From the sequence record NC_031039.1: a DNA stretch of 64,000 nucleotides. One strand, 5' to 3'. How positions within the stretch are numbered: position 1 is the stretch's first letter; each line of letters starts with the position of its first letter. Shown one piece after another: positions 32,802 to 61,163 of the stretch. The notes beneath the pieces are model-generated. The model did not search any database and was not told the origin of the DNA. It saw nothing but the letters and a program-made list of their open reading frames with translations. The position numbers were made by a program, and so were the translations under genes.

Positions 32802-35800
32802 ATGTATGATTATTCTACTAGAAACCTAAGTTTTATTAAGATCTGGAAGTTTCTAAAAGATCAAGGTATAAAAAATAATAAATTCTTTTTAAAATTAAAT
32901 GATGAAACATTACAAGGTGTTGATCCATATGATCCAAATTTAACTGATGAACAAAAGGTAAGAATACAGGTTGAAGTAATGACTAACTTTTGGTATTTCT
33001 TGAGGGAAGTAGTGCGAATTCCTGAATCGGGTGGTTCTATTCATTTCATGCTACACAGAGCTAATCTCGGTCAAATGTTTCTTATGGAAAATAATATTGA
33101 TATGATTGAGATACTACCTCGTCAGAATGGAAAAACAATTGGGGCTGTATGTCGATATATATGGGTATATCATTGGGCTACCAAAAATACTCATATGATT
33201 TTTAGTAATAAACAATACGCCGATTCCCAATTAAATATTAAACGTTTCAATGATATAACAGAATTATTACCAAGTTATTTAAAAACGCATTTAGACCCTA
33301 AAAAAGATACAAATAACTTAGCTCAAATTTCATGTGCAAAGAATAATAATAAAATTGATGCAATGAGTACTGCTAGGACTGTTACTGACGCTGACAAACT
33401 GGGTTAACTAACTATGGCTCAGTATAAACTCCTTTAATTTCTGGAACGTCCTTCCAAGGATAATCAGAAGCTAAGACTTTTAAAAGTAAAGTTCAACGAC
33501 TATCGAAACCGACTTATCAGATCGTTGTGATAACGCTAGATAGGGATAAGGGAGTAGAGTAGAATACAAGCTATAGGTATTCAAAAAGGGGAGCGCCGTA
33601 TTTAGGTGAAGATATAGTCTCATCTCTATGGTAACATAGAGCAGTTCATAAGAGAACGGTATAGGCGTAGCGAACCTATATGAAGGTAACTTGCGTGGTT
33701 GTACAGTGCCAATTATATGGTTAAATTTTTAGCCCATTATAATAGTGATATTATAATGAATCCTTCTTAACTGCTGGGATATCCTTTTAGGACAATCAGC
33801 ATCCAAGCATTGTTATATAAATAACAATGAAGGTTCAACGACTATCGAAACCGACTTATCAGATCGTTGTGATAACGCTAGATATGGGTAAGGGAGTAGA
33901 GTACGACTCAAGCGATTGGAGTTGGAAATGGAAGGCATCTCAATGAGATGAAGATATAGTCTCATCTTCATGGTAACATGGAGCAGTTCATAAGAGAACG
34001 GTATAGGTGTAGCGAACCTATATGAAGATAATGATGATGAATTTGCATTTTTAAAATATAATGATACGGTATACGCTAAACTGGTGCAAACTGGCGTATT
34101 AAAACTCTCTTAACTGCTGGAAACTCCTAAAGTCTTTAGTACCAAAGTGTAATAATCTAAAGGATATATGGACAATCAGCATCCAAGCATTGTTATAAAT
34201 AACAATGAAGGTTCAACGACTATCGAAAAATATAATTTGTATTATGTTGAGTAGAGTACTTTCAAGCGAAAGGAAAAGGAGAGCATGATGAAGGTATTAA
34301 ATACTGGAGTGAAGATATAGTCTCATCTCTATGGAAACATAGAGCAGTTCATAAGAGAACGCATTAGACGTAGCGAATCTAATGGAAGGTAATTATGAGT
34401 GCTGCACCAGCACTATCAAAAGCGTCAGAAGCCGCACAGCGTAATGGTACTCCTTATGGGAAATTAATTACAACAACTCCTAAACTATTGGGCAATACAT
34501 TAGTAATAATGTAATTGAATCTTCCTTAACTGCTGGAAAATCCTATATGGACAATCAGCATCCAAGCATTGTTATAAATAACAATGAAGGTTCAACGACT
34601 ATCGAAACCACTCTAACAGATCGTTGTGATAACGCTAGTTAGAAGGAAGGGAGTAGAGTACAACCTAAGTGATTGAGGTTGGAAAAGGGAAGCATCTCAA
34701 TGAGATGAAGATATAGTCTCATCTTCATGGTAACATGAAGCAGTTCATAAGAGAACGCATTAGATGTAGCGAATCTAATGGAAGATAAATGAATGATCTT
34801 GATACAGAAATGGGTAAATATTGTAAGGGTATGATTGATGATGCATGTCCATTTGATGAAGCTTGGTATGATTGGGATATTGATGAAATTAAAAAATATA
34901 TTGAACAGAACTCTCGAAATGACTTTGTTTATTTAGTATTTAACTATAAAGAGTTAGGGCATGATGACAAATGGTATCAAAAACAATGTCGTCAGCTCAA
35001 TAATGACTTATTAAAAATTAAACGTGAAATATTATTAGAATGGACATTGGCTAACGATACTTCACCTTTTTCAGAGGAACAATTAGCAGAAATTGAGCAA
35101 CATGCAGGTGAACCTATTGGTAAGTTTTATGTAATGAAAAGATATAAATTTGAAATTTTCAGTGAAATGCGAAATATATTTAAAAAATCATGGCTAATCG
35201 GTATAGATATTGGAGCAGGTTTGAATCGAGATTTTACAGTGATATCTATTATTGATCCTAAAGATATGGTTCAAAAAGCAGTATTTAGAAGTAATAATAT
35301 ATCTTTACCTGATTTAAAAGATTTGGTTATACACCTAGTATTAGAATTTTGTCCTAATGGTGTCATTATTCCAGAACGAAATAACTTAGGTATCTCTTTA
35401 ATACAAGATCTACTACGTTCAGAAGTAGCTAATAACTTATATTATGAAGTTAGAGAAGTAAAGGGAGAAAAGAAAGTTGATGACCCAAAAAGATCATCTA
35501 AAAAGACAGTTAAGACTAAAACAAGAGTTTATGGGGTTACTACTAGTAAAGATAGTCGGGATATAATGATCAATGAGATTCTTAGTAATGCAGTTAATGA
35601 TACTCCATATGTGTTTACAAGTAAATATATTTTTGAAGAATTAAGAACATTAGAAAGAAATAAGAAAGGAAAGATTGAACATAGGGATGGAGGTCATGAT
35701 GATACATTATTCTCATGGCTAGTGGCATGCTATGCTTTCTTATATGGAAATAATATAAATAAATTTGTTAAAGTCATCAGTGATGGCGATAATAATGAGA

Positions 35801-56210: not shown

Positions 56211-59200
56211 TTATTCTCTAGTTAGAGAATAAATTGCTTGTATTGCTTCATTCCCAATTTGACGAGAGTTTCGTCCCATTTGGTCTAACATATTCTTCTT
56301 TTCCCATATTAGTCGTTCTGCTTCTTCATTAGCTTCTTTACTAAATACTCCACGTAAAGATACTGTATCACCCAAAATCTTCCATTAGATTCGCTACGTC
56401 TAATGCGTTCTCTTATGAACTGCTCTATGTTTCCATAGAGATGAGACTATATCTTCACAATATAATTGTGCCCTCCGTTTCCATTTAAAGAGGAATTATA
56501 ACCTTATTACGGAATACCTCTACCGCTTGGCTGTACTCTACTCCCTTCCTTCTAACTAGCGTTATCACAACGATCTGTTAGAGTGGTTTCGATAGTCGTT
56601 GAACCTTCATCTTTAAATGAATTAAAGATGCTTGGATGCTGATTGTCCATATAGGATTTTCCAGCAGTTAAAAGGGTTTTACTACGACAGTAGATTATTA
56701 TCTTTTATAGGTAAATACTAAATTACCACAATCCCATATTCTTTTAAATCTAGTTTTATCCATGATTTCAAATTCAGTACTATCATCACTATATAATTTT
56801 GGAAATTTCTTTTTGAGATTAGACTTTCTATAATTAAATCTATGGAATCGTTGAGTTTTTTCAACGTTAACATACCAATAGTTGGGTTTACTAATATGAC
56901 TTAATTCAAATTTATTATTGATATAAACATTGCCATCTGACCAGCGTTTATCTGCATAGGTTATTAATTCTTTCCACTCATAATTTCTCTCGAAGTATTT
57001 GAGAAGTTTACTAAAAGCACCTATTACTCTATAGTCCATATCGGTAGCGAATCTTGATAGTTCAAAAATATTATCAGCACTATTTCTACCTAGGCTTTTT
57101 CTAAGTTTACTAAAAGTCATTACCGCTACAAGTTCATCGCCATCTTCTTTTGGAAGCCATAAGCCTAATTTAATTGATGACAAATCTTTTCCCTGAATGT
57201 GATTTCTTTCTAGGAATTCATTTTTAAAATTGTTATCAATTACTTCTACATAACAATTTCTAGCGTATATTTTAGTAGAATTATTTAATTTTAGTAGGTG
57301 TTTTATTTTTTCTTTTACTATGAGAGGTTTGTTAACCCATTCGTCTTCAAAAATTTGAATTAGTCTAATCCCTTTACTATTACATTTTTCTAATTTTTCT
57401 AAATGATAGTTTCTTTTCTTCCCCATTTGCTCTGAATGCCAATATAAACCATTAAATTCAAAAGCAATTTTTTTGGAAGGAATAAATATATCAATCTCTT
57501 TACCTTCAAGTAATTTCCTGTCATTACATATGACTTTATCTACAACTAATCCTTTAATAAAAGAAGATAGTTCTTTTTCCATTTTTGATGAACTTTTAAA
57601 TGCACAATATGGACATCTATTTCCATTATCAAAGTTTTTAATTGTAACTTCATACTCCTTATTACAACTATGATGTAACAATCTAATCTTCGTTTTATTA
57701 TTACGATATTCACCTAATAATGAATACTCATTATTTGTAACTAAGCTAATTTTTCTTTTAACCTCATCAGTAGTTAGTCTTCTTTTACCAGAACATTGAG
57801 GACATCTATTTTTCAAAGCATAATAAGGAGTAGTCTTCCATTCATAATTACAGTCATTACATCTGAAAAGTATTTTGGTATCGATATTGATATATTTCTC
57901 AAGACTTATAAGTCTTCCATTAGTCTTTTCTTTTAATTCCTTCTTAAACTCATCATTGCTTTTTAATCTTGATTTACCTTTATTAATATCAGCGCACTGA
58001 GGACATCTTCTACCATTATGAAATACATCAGGTCTAACCTCATATATATTTCCACATAATTCATGCCTTAATTTGATTTTAGTCTTATTGTTAATATATT
58101 CATTGGATAAAACTGTATAGGTATTGTTAGTTAGTAATTTAACTTCTTCTTTGAATTCATCCAGTGTCTTTTTACGTGGCATACACTAATACCTCCAAAT
58201 AATTAATAATTATTTGTTTATTTGACACTGTATTCCCTTAAAAAGAAATAATATTAATTTTATCGTAGTCTCCGCCTAAAGCCTTTAAATAACCATTATA
58301 AGGAATTACTGTATCAACAAAAAGTTCATCCTCTGCGGGATAGTCAGGGTATATAACAGGATAATCAGGTAAGTATCTATCTTCCAGCTTTTGAGGTCGT
58401 GTTTCCTTTGTTGAAAGAATTCTTATTTTACTTGGATAAATATTCTATAGTGATAGGTAAAGATTTGATTTTATCTCCTCTTTTTCCCCCACTTCACACC
58501 CTACGTGCGACTTTCATCGCATAAGGCGTTCCATCAATTTAATAAAAATTTTTTAATAAGAATTGGTATACTATCGATTGGTGTATCATATTTAATTCTA
58601 AGAATTGGTAAATTATATTTCTTACAAAAATCATTTTTAATATTATCATGTTTTTGTATTAATTCTAATTTTTTAATACGGTCATTTTCATCGTTACCAA
58701 AGATAGGAAGAAAATGTTGTCTACCATCATATTCTATTATAGCATTAAATTCCTCTACAAAAAAATCAAAAGGTAAGGGTTTTCTATCTTTACATTCTTT
58801 AAAAGTTTTTTGATAGGTATATTCTGTTCCCATATTATTTAAAATATTTTTTATTAATAATTCCCCACTACTCATTTTACAGTTTTTACATGAAAATTTA
58901 TTAGATGTAATATTTTTTAATGAAAATTTATTAATAGTATTACACTCTAAATGTATTATTTCTAATGGAGTTACATTATTTATATACTCACCAATCACTT
59001 TATACTCATTAGGATTTATTTTGTCTAACTGTTCTTGAACATATTCTTTATTTTTCTTAATAAGTCCTGAACAGTTAGGACAACGTCTCCCTAGAGATGT
59101 AAAATTTCCTGCTTTGACTTCATAAATGAATTTACATTTATTATGACGCATTGTTACCTTAGAATGATAATTTTTATAATTAGACAAAACAGTATATTCA

Positions 59201-61163
59201 TCTTTTACTAATTCCTTAACCTTATTGATAAATTTTTCTGTAGTTAACTTTTCTTTTGAATTACAATGAGGACATCCATAACCCTGTAATAAGTTACAAG
59301 GTCTTGCCTCAAATTCTTTATTACAAATTTCATGTAATATTAAAATTTTTGTTTTAGAATTAATATATTCACCAATTCGTTTGTAACCTTTTAGTATTTG
59401 ATTTAGTCTTAAATCAAATGAAGTATTATCCAATTTTCTCATTAAAATCACTCCACATAACTATTTATTATTATGTTTTGTGATTGTTCGATTATTTTTA
59501 TTAAACTGACTATGACCCTTCGCTCCAATGGAGTTACCCATCTTCATAACTACTATGGTCTGCTGACTTTCTATATAAGAGTATCAACTATAATTTCTCT
59601 TATATAGAATCTCTGACGTTCCGTAAATGATAGTATAGCTATAACTTAGATGCCTTCTGCCCTATATAAACTTCTATTGTACCACACTTTACAATCAGGT
59701 CGTTCACCAGTACCGTATTACTAAACCCTGAATTTATATAGTATAAAAAGGTTCGTGTTCCTCATCATATTATAGCACCGCCCACCCTATCTATTAGTAT
59801 TATAGTACTACTAATATTCAGATGACTTCACCTAACTTCATACAAATATTTTATATAGTTTAAAATAGATGCATGTAGGAGTATTAGCGACAAGTCTTCA
59901 ATGAAAATGGTCATATCTTTTACTTGTTCTCATTTACAGTTTAGATTATAAAATCTACTCCATTTCACATTAAATGCTTATAGGAGAACGTCACATACGA
60001 TACTGCTCTATTGGATACCTTGTTACATATACATGTTTATCTTTGGTAATATCAACTGCCGCAATGAATAGAATATCAGTTAATGTAAAGTTACGTCCTA
60101 GTTCTTCTCTATATAATGGAATAGGAATCTCATTTCCTTTATCATCTTTAATCATTAAACTATTAAAACGACTTTCAATAGACTTAATGTATAATGAGAT
60201 CATCTTTTTAACTGCTTCCTCAGAAAATTGTTCTCTTATATTACTGATGGTTATCTCTTTTCCATTATGCTTAAATTTACTAAGTTCTGATTCACGTTCA
60301 AGAATATAATCTTGGATATATTTAAGAAAGAATGGATAAAATTCTACCACTAATTGTGATAGGGGAATACCAGTCCATCCAAATCTAATAGGGTTATCCT
60401 TCCAGCTATTTGACTTAAATCGTGGTGCTGAGATTACACTACGAGTTGCATAATCAACAGATTTACCTAAAGAGTTTTGATGGAACATACCATTTTTACC
60501 AGCTAAAGAGGATGTAAAATAGTCATAGATATCATATAAAAGAGTCTGAATAGATGATTCTGTTATTACTCCCATAAAATCATAATCTTCACCCTTAGAA
60601 ATTGATTGGCTATACCTAATTAATTTAGCATATTTGTCATTCACTTCATCAACAGCTTTAATCGTATCATTAGAAGATTTTGAGGGATTATAATCTCTAT
60701 AAAATGCCGGAATCACTAAATATTTGTCAATAAATATATCATCCTTACCAAGTTTATTTAATAATGTAAGATAACTTGTTCTTCTATCAGTTCCAGTATT
60801 ACTAAATTTTAATTGGTCATAAATAGTATAAAAATAGGTAACTCCAGTTTTACCATTATCTTTATCTTCAACTAACCTACCGCCCTCAACTTTAAAATAT
60901 TTTTTTCCAGATAGACAATCTGCAATTTTTCGATCCATAGAGGTTAGAAGCTTATAAATTACTGGATGGAGAAATTTTCTCTTTAAGTCTATATAACCAA
61001 AAATTATTTTTCTTTCTTTACTTCCCGGATAACCAAAAATACTAGTTGAAAATAATCCATCTTCAGTTGGTATATTTCCCATATTAAAGTAAACCGGATT
61101 TGTTACTTCTTTACATGCATGAGAAGTAATAAATTTATCTATATTTAATGTATCTATTTTCAT
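56211..61163 (-). CDS. Virion RNA polymerase beta'-like catalytic subunit; spliced, exons 59999-61163, 58262-58446, 56211-56372 (503 aa)
   Basis: GLFS..IFG, GYIDL, GKSVDYATRSVI. Spliced text TRYPIEQY(Q)NIYPSKI...LKALGGDYD|GDTVSL restores DxDGD. Total 1512 nt, in frame. Late promoter at 61185-61196. Confidence 0.9.
56373..58261 (-). mobile_element. Group I intron with a homing endonuclease in the P1 loop (1889 nt)
   Basis: Exon end ACTACGAT pairs with IGS GTCGTAGT located after the ORF. Core motifs present; ends ...GATTTTG. Confidence 0.9.
56698..58182 (-). CDS. Intron-encoded putative homing endonuclease (zinc-ribbon repeats + PD-(D/E)xK + Hef-like C-terminal domain)
   Basis: CPQC/CPYC repeats; EIDIFIPSKKIAFEFNGLYWH; ELSRFA...ITYADKRWSDG. 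Confidence 0.8.
   Translation of the reverse strand: MPRKKTLDEFKEEVKLLTNNTYTVLSNEYINNKTKIKLRHELCGNIYEVRPDVFHNGRRCPQCADINKGKSRLKSNDEFKKELKEKTNGRLISLEKYINIDTKILFRCNDCNYEWKTTPYYALKNRCPQCSGKRRLTTDEVKRKISLVTNNEYSLLGEYRNNKTKIRLLHHSCNKEYEVTIKNFDNGNRCPYCAFKSSSKMEKELSSFIKGLVVDKVICNDRKLLEGKEIDIFIPSKKIAFEFNGLYWHSEQMGKKRNYHLEKLEKCNSKGIRLIQIFEDEWVNKPLIVKEKIKHLLKLNNSTKIYARNCYVEVIDNNFKNEFLERNHIQGKDLSSIKLGLWLPKEDGDELVAVMTFSKLRKSLGRNSADNIFELSRFATDMDYRVIGAFSKLLKYFERNYEWKELITYADKRWSDGNVYINNKFELSHISKPNYWYVNVEKTQRFHRFNYRKSNLKKKFPKLYSDDSTEFEIMDKTRFKRIWDCGNLVFTYKR
58447..59998 (-). mobile_element. Group II (IIB-like) intron lacking reverse transcriptase (1552 nt)
   Basis: 5' GUAUG and 3' AU ends. 34-nt domain V (58496-58529) with CGC triad, GAAA loop and AC bulge. 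Domain VI with bulged A at -8. AAGUCAGCAGACCAUAGUAG and GGAGCGAAGGG landmarks. EBS1 GAUACU pairs with IBS1 AGUAUC. Confidence 0.9.
58534..59442 (-). CDS. Endonuclease ORF in domain IV of the group II intron (zinc-ribbon repeats + Vsr/DUF559-like domain)
   Basis: CPHC/CPNC/CKNC repeats; LPFDFFVEEFNAIIEYDGRQHF. No RT YADD motif. Stop lies 4 nt before domain V. The start may be the upstream GTG at 59451. Confidence 0.82.
   Translation of the reverse strand: MRKLDNTSFDLRLNQILKGYKRIGEYINSKTKILILHEICNKEFEARPCNLLQGYGCPHCNSKEKLTTEKFINKVKELVKDEYTVLSNYKNYHSKVTMRHNKCKFIYEVKAGNFTSLGRRCPNCSGLIKKNKEYVQEQLDKINPNEYKVIGEYINNVTPLEIIHLECNTINKFSLKNITSNKFSCKNCKMSSGELLIKNILNNMGTEYTYQKTFKECKDRKPLPFDFFVEEFNAIIEYDGRQHFLPIFGNDENDRIKKLELIQKHDNIKNDFCKKYNLPILRIKYDTPIDSIPILIKKFLLN

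Follow-up and report, generated by a model that had tools for sequence, protein, structure and literature searches.

Introduction

For a long time, group II introns were believed to be tied to reverse transcriptases (RTs) and not to occur in phages. Canonical bacterial introns of class IIB, represented here by two examples from viral contigs (L012 and L017), carry in the loop of domain IV (D4) a large open reading frame (ORF) of the RT-maturase-HNH type which matches the Pfam family RVT_1. In fungal mitochondrial rRNA genes there are group II introns whose ORF is a LAGLIDADG DNA endonuclease, which have no RT-type maturase and whose mobility is thought to be DNA-based; GIY-YIG cases are also reported (Mullineux et al. 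2010, as cited in PMC12350094). Endonucleases of the I-Bth0305I/EDxHD kind, found in phage group I introns, are likewise intron-borne and combine a Vsr-like fold (PDB code 3r3p) with a modular DNA-binding N-terminus. Here we analyze the group II intron of g145, a virion RNA polymerase subunit gene of Bacillus phage AR9, which lies in a 64,000-nucleotide stretch of sequence record NC_031039.1 (the window). This intron carries the endonuclease gene g147 in place of an RT, and very probably it spreads by homing at the DNA level and splices without an RT-type maturase.

The AR9 intron resembles the canonical IIB introns in its domain I (D1), which is recognized by the same Rfam model (RF02004), in its near-identical domains V and VI (D5/D6) and in the placement of the ORF in the D4 loop, but g147 has no RVT_1 match. 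With the LAGLIDADG introns, as PMC12350094 presents them, it shares a DNA endonuclease as its ORF, the lack of an RT-type maturase and, presumably, DNA-based mobility; it differs from them in the Vsr/PD-(D/E)xK-like fold with zinc-ribbon repeats and in that its host is a protein-coding gene of a phage, not an rRNA gene of an organelle. Finally, g147 is like I-Bth0305I in predicted fold, intron-borne location and modular build, but shows no significant sequence match to it, has zinc ribbons of the CapR/DUF4379 type N-terminally and is carried by a group II intron.

Both the intron and the proposal that it homes have been published, by Merk, Jones and Eddy (Nucleic Acids Res 2025; PMC12350094). 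Their Table S1 (see also Fig. 5) lists the identical object (NC_031039 121998-120447, ORF 121442-120537) with the host gene ‘viral RNA pol beta prime’ and the entries class B, D1D4-5, CGC, GTATG, AT and HEG. They describe CapR-like repeats with an EDxHD/Vsr-like nuclease, note that group I introns of this gene carry homologous endonucleases, propose endonuclease-mediated homing and list an ORF-less copy in phage Internexus. Nothing essential in our account differs from theirs. To this we add positions, backed by covariation, for exon-binding site 1 (EBS1) and for epsilon'; the finding that the D4 stem overlaps the end of the ORF; a link to a late start site already in the literature; an explicit search of the whole genome for an RT; and eight relatives from metagenomes, among which there is a second insertion site.

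Intron boundaries and the empty site

Window positions 58200-60300 are 100% identical to positions 120200-122300 of AR9 (KU878088.1) and 99.5% identical to phage PBS1. AR9 coordinates equal window coordinates plus 62000, and all features below are on the minus strand (-) and in window coordinates unless stated otherwise. GenBank annotates g145 as a 3-piece join. Its group II intron (58447..59998) is 1552 nt long, of IIB-like class, and runs from a 5' GUAUG to a 3' AU, as placed by Rfam matches, by its precise absence from phage Goe21 and by Table S1 of Merk et al. Exon 1 (59999..61163) was located by tblastn with the intron-less Goe21 protein (aa 1-389, 99% identity). Its last bases, CAGTATC (60005-59999), constitute intron-binding site 1 (IBS1). 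The intron then opens with GTATG (59998) and closes with CACTAT (58447), and exon 2 begins AGAATATT. Exon 2 (58262..58446, 3' end approximate; QNIYPS...GGDYD) corresponds to Goe21 aa 390-450 in the same tblastn search and is followed by a group I intron.

At the insertion point Goe21 reads CAGTATCAGAATATT, which is exactly the sequence of the joined AR9 exons, and its uninterrupted 503-aa protein is colinear with the three AR9 exons (tblastn). Joining the AR9 exons gives TRYPIEQYQNIYPS. A first-pass annotation of the window had set the intron at 58447-59998 and given the sequence that its removal restores; given the Goe21 empty site and the colinear Goe21 protein, those boundaries are exact.

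Near-identical phages differ at this position: AR9 and PBS1 have the intron with its ORF, Internexus has the intron without an ORF and Goe21 has no intron, while the exons of phages that differ in intron presence or absence are 91-99% identical. The residual value of the locus is a practical one: in a tractable B. subtilis system, AR9 (intron and ORF), Internexus (intron alone) and Goe21 (no intron) make up a natural trio, which would allow direct tests of maturase-free splicing and of endonuclease-driven group II homing.

Structure of the ribozyme

The window was scanned with Rfam covariance models at gathering thresholds. The D1 core (59771..59944) matches group-II-D1D4-5 (RF02004, gathering score 34.5) with 80.7 bits (E 1.4e-15), and the D5/D6 region (58447-58531) matches Intron_gpII (RF00029) with 55.2 bits (E 4e-08). 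These matches, with an AAGU bulge of IIB type, bear out the IIB-like ribozyme of the first-pass annotation, and several of the details it gave hold as well. The Rfam alignment places its 34-nt domain V at 58529-58496 (58496..58529), with a GAAA loop, an AC bulge and the CGC triad at 58528-58526. The alignment also leaves unpaired the bulged A at 58454 in domain VI (58450..58492), which is the eighth base from the 3' end and hence the predicted branch point at -8.

Related ribozymes gathered from metagenomes and viral contigs were used to examine whether these pairings are conserved. In domain V all 14/14 pairs are formed in 10 relatives (100% of the alignment cells are paired) and five of them have changed on both sides; domain VI has four pairs with compensatory changes. 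Over D5/D6 as a whole, in ten sequences, 98.5% of pair cells are standard, versus 86.5% in shuffled alignments and 35-52% when partners are slid. The nine pairs changed on both sides in this set were reached by 0/500 shuffles.

The 5' end GUAUG, correctly called non-canonical at the outset, departs from GUGYG at position 3. Intron positions 3-4 (A and U, 59995..59996), which form epsilon, covary in five related introns with positions 163-164 (G and U, 59835..59836). The latter lie in the AAGU bulge (59838-59835), where the IIB consensus is AARC, and make up epsilon'. They are the sole column pair that fits positions 3-4 in all five aligned introns, with the combinations AU/GU (AR9), CC/GG, UU/GA and, twice, GC/GC; three further relatives also have GC/GC. 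Position 3 of AR9 pairs A-U with epsilon' instead of G-C, and in relatives the pair is C-G, U-A or G-C. A compensating change in epsilon' thus accounts for the unusual GUAUG end.

Recognition of the 5' exon can be placed in the same way. EBS1 (GGUACUG, 59708..59714) lies in the loop that caps a D1 hairpin with the closing helix CAGGG/CCUG, distal to a receptor-like motif of the form UAUGR...YCUAAG, and pairs with the AR9 exon end CAGUAUC (the last 6-7 bases of the exon). In relatives L005, L006 and L008 the homologous column is complementary to CAAUAUC, AAUUUCC and GAUAUC. In the held-out introns L036, L037 and L039 it pairs with AACUAUC (7/7) and, twice, with GAUAUC. EBS1-IBS1 covariation is found in 7/8 related introns, with five different IBS1 sequences matched.

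The first-pass annotation had instead assigned EBS1 to 59580-59585. The GATACT found there is indeed complementary to the exon end, but it lies past the D1 closure, in the loop of a variable hairpin (59571..59607, alifold consensus) which we read as domain II. Relatives differ in the length of this hairpin and do not conserve the hexamer, which does not covary with the exon either, and we rejected this position (59585-59580) in favor of 59714-59708. A perfect 6-mer match to the exon is expected by chance with a probability of ~0.13 (a rough estimate, from 556 positions and 4096 hexamers).

Two further conserved elements complete the 5' part of the ribozyme. The receptor-like motif consists of UAUGA (59765..59769) and UCUAAG (59645..59650); relatives have UAUGG...CCUAAG, so that the AR9 form represents a compensatory change. 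We take this motif to be, in all likelihood, the zeta receptor for the GAAA loop of domain V. The segment J2/3 and domain III (59515..59570) is a conserved alignment block, CAGCAG..CAUAGUAG..GCGAAGG, and coincides with a weak match to the Rfam D1D4-1 model (59515-59608, 25.4 bits, under the gathering score of 35).

The 5' strand of the D4 stem, UCAGUUUAAUAAAAAU (59494..59509), forms 16 contiguous pairs with 58549-58534. This 3' strand (58534..58549) is at the same time the end of the g147 reading frame, encoding codons F-L-L-N and the TGA stop. The stem is kept with different sequences in other introns: it has 12 bp in L005, 9 in L006, 11 in L008 and 8 in Internexus.

Genes for RNA polymerase subunits are often split in jumbo phages, and the exon 1 frame of g145 runs into a TGA stop 8 nt inside the intron. 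One could read this as a naturally split gene, with a dead ribozyme and a polymerase subunit made as separate polypeptides. We find this hardly credible. Exon 2 is only ~62 codons long and lacks its own start codon and ribosome-binding site; the DYDGD motif, catalytic in the polymerase, is divided, with exon 2 ending ...GGDYD and exon 3 starting GDTVS; Goe21 has a single 503-aa chain; and the ribozyme pairings are kept by compensatory changes. Three of these points imply that the intron must splice: the divided DYDGD motif, the missing start of exon 2 and the compensatory maintenance of ribozyme contacts.

The endonuclease g147

The D4 loop holds g147 (58534..59442), a predicted homing endonuclease of 302 aa plus stop, with GGAG 8 nt before its ATG and annotated in GenBank as ‘homing endonuclease, group I intron VSR’. 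Three zinc-ribbon repeats (CapR/DUF4379-like) precede a nuclease of Vsr fold; the three Pfam matches are all under the curated cut-offs. The protein matches PHROG 559 (E 1.5e-75) and shares 31% identity (E 2e-27) with its homologue g146, the endonuclease encoded in the group I intron downstream. An AlphaFold (AF2) model computed with a 66-sequence alignment has a pLDDT of 94.6; a single-sequence model (pLDDT 34.8) was discarded. Foldseek searches of the PDB with the former model returned E. coli Vsr (1cw0/1vsr, probability 1.00, E 1e-3) and I-Bth0305I (3r3p, probability 1.00, TM 0.65 on the target). Residues D226, E237, H243, D266 and K269, as well as the zinc-binding cysteines, are invariant in the 66 homologues and all intact in g147, which Merk et al. 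(PMC12350094) place as an outgroup of the EDxHD family.

The homology to g146 and the modeled fold, which appears Vsr/I-Bth0305I-like, support the first-pass view of a zinc-ribbon/Vsr-like nuclease in D4 of the same type as the group I intron ORFs. The same view held that RT motifs are lacking, and g147 indeed has no RVT_1 match in Pfam, where ORFs of sister introns score E ~1e-37, and the fold search gives nucleases rather than polymerases.

A late promoter belonging to g147 itself had also been suggested. The sequence AACA-N6-TA is found at 59477-59466 (59466..59477), and differential RNA sequencing had mapped the primary late start site of g147 to AR9 121466(-), which is window position 59466 (Lavysh et al. 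2017, Table S3). RNA values for g147 are 0.54, 47.7 and 469 across three columns of a supplementary table, which we take to be the 5, 20 and 40 min libraries, and late expression is seen for g145, g146 and g147 alike (Lavysh et al. 2017). The 5' strand of the D4 stem (59494-59509) lies upstream of the g147 start site, and the gene's own mRNA therefore cannot form that stem. In the full pre-mRNA, on the other hand, the D4 stem covers the last codons and the stop of the ORF. Coupling between g147 translation and ribozyme folding is possible.

These data also bear on whether the intron still moves. It could be an immobile element that persists by vertical descent, precise loss being rare, with g147 as an inactive passenger, and the ORF-less Internexus copy would fit the decay phase of a homing cycle. 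This seems improbable, however, as every family-invariant residue is intact in g147, its late promoter is active and intron presence or absence differs among phages with 91-99% identical exons.

Search for a reverse transcriptase and proposed mode of spread

A source of RT activity in trans was sought with five RT ORFs from sister introns, and with a hidden Markov model (HMM) built from them, against the 251 kb of AR9. No RT was found in this genome (best tblastn E 0.018, best HMM E 0.34), and none is annotated in the feature tables that were fetched, which cover ~3/4 of the AR9 record. This agrees with Korn et al., who describe AR9 as lacking an RT, unlike Staphylococcus jumbo phages. Because g147 has no RVT_1 domain, retrohoming is unavailable to the AR9 intron, and because both the intron and the phage genome lack an RT-type maturase, splicing would need none.

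A different arrangement can be imagined in which retrohoming continues through a phage or host RT acting in trans and g147, a free-standing endonuclease with no relation to the intron, has merely landed in D4. Sister ribozymes do carry RT/HNH ORFs, and ORF-less group II introns can use RTs in trans (Merk et al., PMC12350094). We nonetheless regard this as highly unlikely: AR9 has no RT homologue, as far as a search of the phage genome tells, and the arrangement of ORF and D4 stem is conserved and co-evolving.

The reading that we favor, a group II intron that bears a DNA endonuclease instead of an RT-maturase, is also the core of the first-pass annotation, and the anatomy, the nuclease fold and the RT search all agree with it. 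We infer the following course of events. A pre-mRNA would begin at the g145 late promoter (window 61185), and the ribozyme would fold from this g145 transcript. It would recognize the 5' exon by pairing of EBS1 (59714-59708) with CAGUAUC and branch at A58454, so that the intron would leave as a lariat in vivo and the exons would be joined as ...EQY|QNIY.... Removal of this intron and of the downstream group I intron would restore the 503-aa subunit. The D4 loop encodes the modular g147, with three zinc-ribbon repeats to bind DNA and a nuclease of Vsr/EDxHD fold, and the gene is transcribed late from the promoter in D4 into an mRNA without D1-D3 and without the 5' strand of the D4 stem. In a mixed infection, g147 would cut the intron-less allele near the insertion site, and repair would copy the intron and its flanks from the intron-bearing genome, in DNA-level homing as for group I introns.

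Several observations weigh against this reading. Merk et al. (PMC12350094) state that splicing was not confirmed by them. The Foldseek E-values for g147 are marginal (1e-3 to 1e-2) although the probability is 1.00, and comparison of g147 with PDB sequences by phmmer and by profile search gave chance-level hits only, nothing significant to Vsr or I-Bth0305I; as there is no significant match at the sequence level, the nuclease family assignment rests on the fold. For EBS2-IBS2 there are several weak AU/GU-rich candidates, none of them at a consistent alignment position in this AT-rich RNA.

If the proposed course is right, this intron of an essential polymerase gene has exchanged its RT for a DNA endonuclease of the group I style, which would make ribozyme and mobility engine interchangeable modules. 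It would also mean that a group II intron is able to splice in a cell without a cognate maturase, a point already in print for the AR9 intron since 2025.

Relatives of the intron and age of the partnership

The first-pass annotation had proposed capture of a local endonuclease. Of 881 g147 homologues, genomic context was examined for ten. All eight that are ~300 aa long (42-61% identity) sit in a ribozyme of the AR9 type, and in the six for which the contig includes the 3' side D5 starts 3-10 nt past the stop; the two remoter homologues (36-40%) are not in such a ribozyme. In most of the endonuclease-bearing relatives the intron lies in the same gene and at the position that it has in AR9. Since g147 is far closer to the eight metagenomic endonucleases of the same ribozyme (42-61%) than to AR9 g146, and since the D4 stem co-evolves with the end of the ORF, the partnership is an old one. 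Local capture by AR9 does not fit these relationships; by sequence comparison, endonuclease and ribozyme appear to be an old unit, inherited together.

A scan of viral contigs with a D5 pattern gave 19 loci. Several have ORFs of 583-611 aa that end ~20-55 nt before D5, and others are ORF-less. The two ORFs that were put to Pfam, those of L012 (611 aa) and L017 (593 aa), both match RVT_1 at E ~1e-37. L012, L017 and a third locus (L025) match the same RF02004 model as AR9 and have a nearly identical domain VI. In a ribozyme tree of 12 taxa (D1 core plus D5/D6), one branch with 80% support parts the RT-type from the endonuclease-type introns, which would be compatible with a single switch from RT to endonuclease but is not proof of one.

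In L008 (2475-4002), L037 (1985-3490) and L039 (from 1993) the intron occupies a second insertion site, which follows ...RY|P and lies 15 nt upstream of that in AR9. At this site the exon ends in GAUAUC, and EBS1 has changed to match (GGUAUC).

With the last codons doubling as D4 stem, the ~300-aa clade in this ribozyme type only (8/8 sampled) and two sites 15 nt apart with EBS1 re-matched, the pair looks like an old co-adapted unit. Tentatively, and with a good deal less confidence than in the reading as a whole, we suggest that g147, or translation through the D4 stem, may take part in or control splicing, and that colonization of a new site may need joint retuning of nuclease specificity and EBS1.

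A rival reading would make g147 a splicing cofactor as well, maturase-like in the manner of some group I LAGLIDADG proteins, and the intron not protein-independent. The co-occurrence of endonuclease and ribozyme in 8/8 cases across a 42-61% range of protein identity speaks for this, as do the use of the g147 ORF end as D4 stem and the lack of another maturase in AR9. Internexus has a near-identical ribozyme without an ORF in an essential gene, which implies that splicing is not strictly dependent on g147 encoded in cis. In a group II intron of fungi, the LAGLIDADG protein reportedly did not promote splicing, which also bears against a cofactor role, and we consider such a role for g147 rather unlikely.

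The ORF-less Internexus copy (L002, 3303-3897) is 595 nt long, has a bare 19-nt hairpin as its domain IV and differs from the AR9 ribozyme by a handful of substitutions, which makes it a minimal ribozyme of natural origin. It may represent either loss of the ORF or the ancestral state. The closest metagenomic relative is L005 (501-1675), whose endonuclease is 60% identical to g147 and whose intron begins with GUCCG, with a matching epsilon' GG. Exon 1 of the host gene is called there as two overlapping ORFs (322 and 70 aa), a split that could stem from misassembly or mark the beginning of decay.

Other introns in the same genes and genome

In AR9, g145 is interrupted a second time by a group I intron (56373-58261 (-), Rfam match 56423-56734) which splits the catalytic aspartate motif of the polymerase and carries the 494-aa endonuclease g146; g146 has a late start of its own, mapped at AR9 120207, or window 58207. 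In L038 (45-2424) an endonuclease-bearing group II intron is followed by two group I introns within 900 nt (1734-2012 and 2208-2424), a very dense packing of introns for this part of the gene. Elsewhere in the window, the large terminase gene g121 (33395-34740 (+)) contains four tandem group I introns (70-93 bits) in ~1.35 kb. It is annotated as a 5-piece join, and the exons between its introns are roughly 70-130 nt long, as judged from the gaps between Rfam matches.

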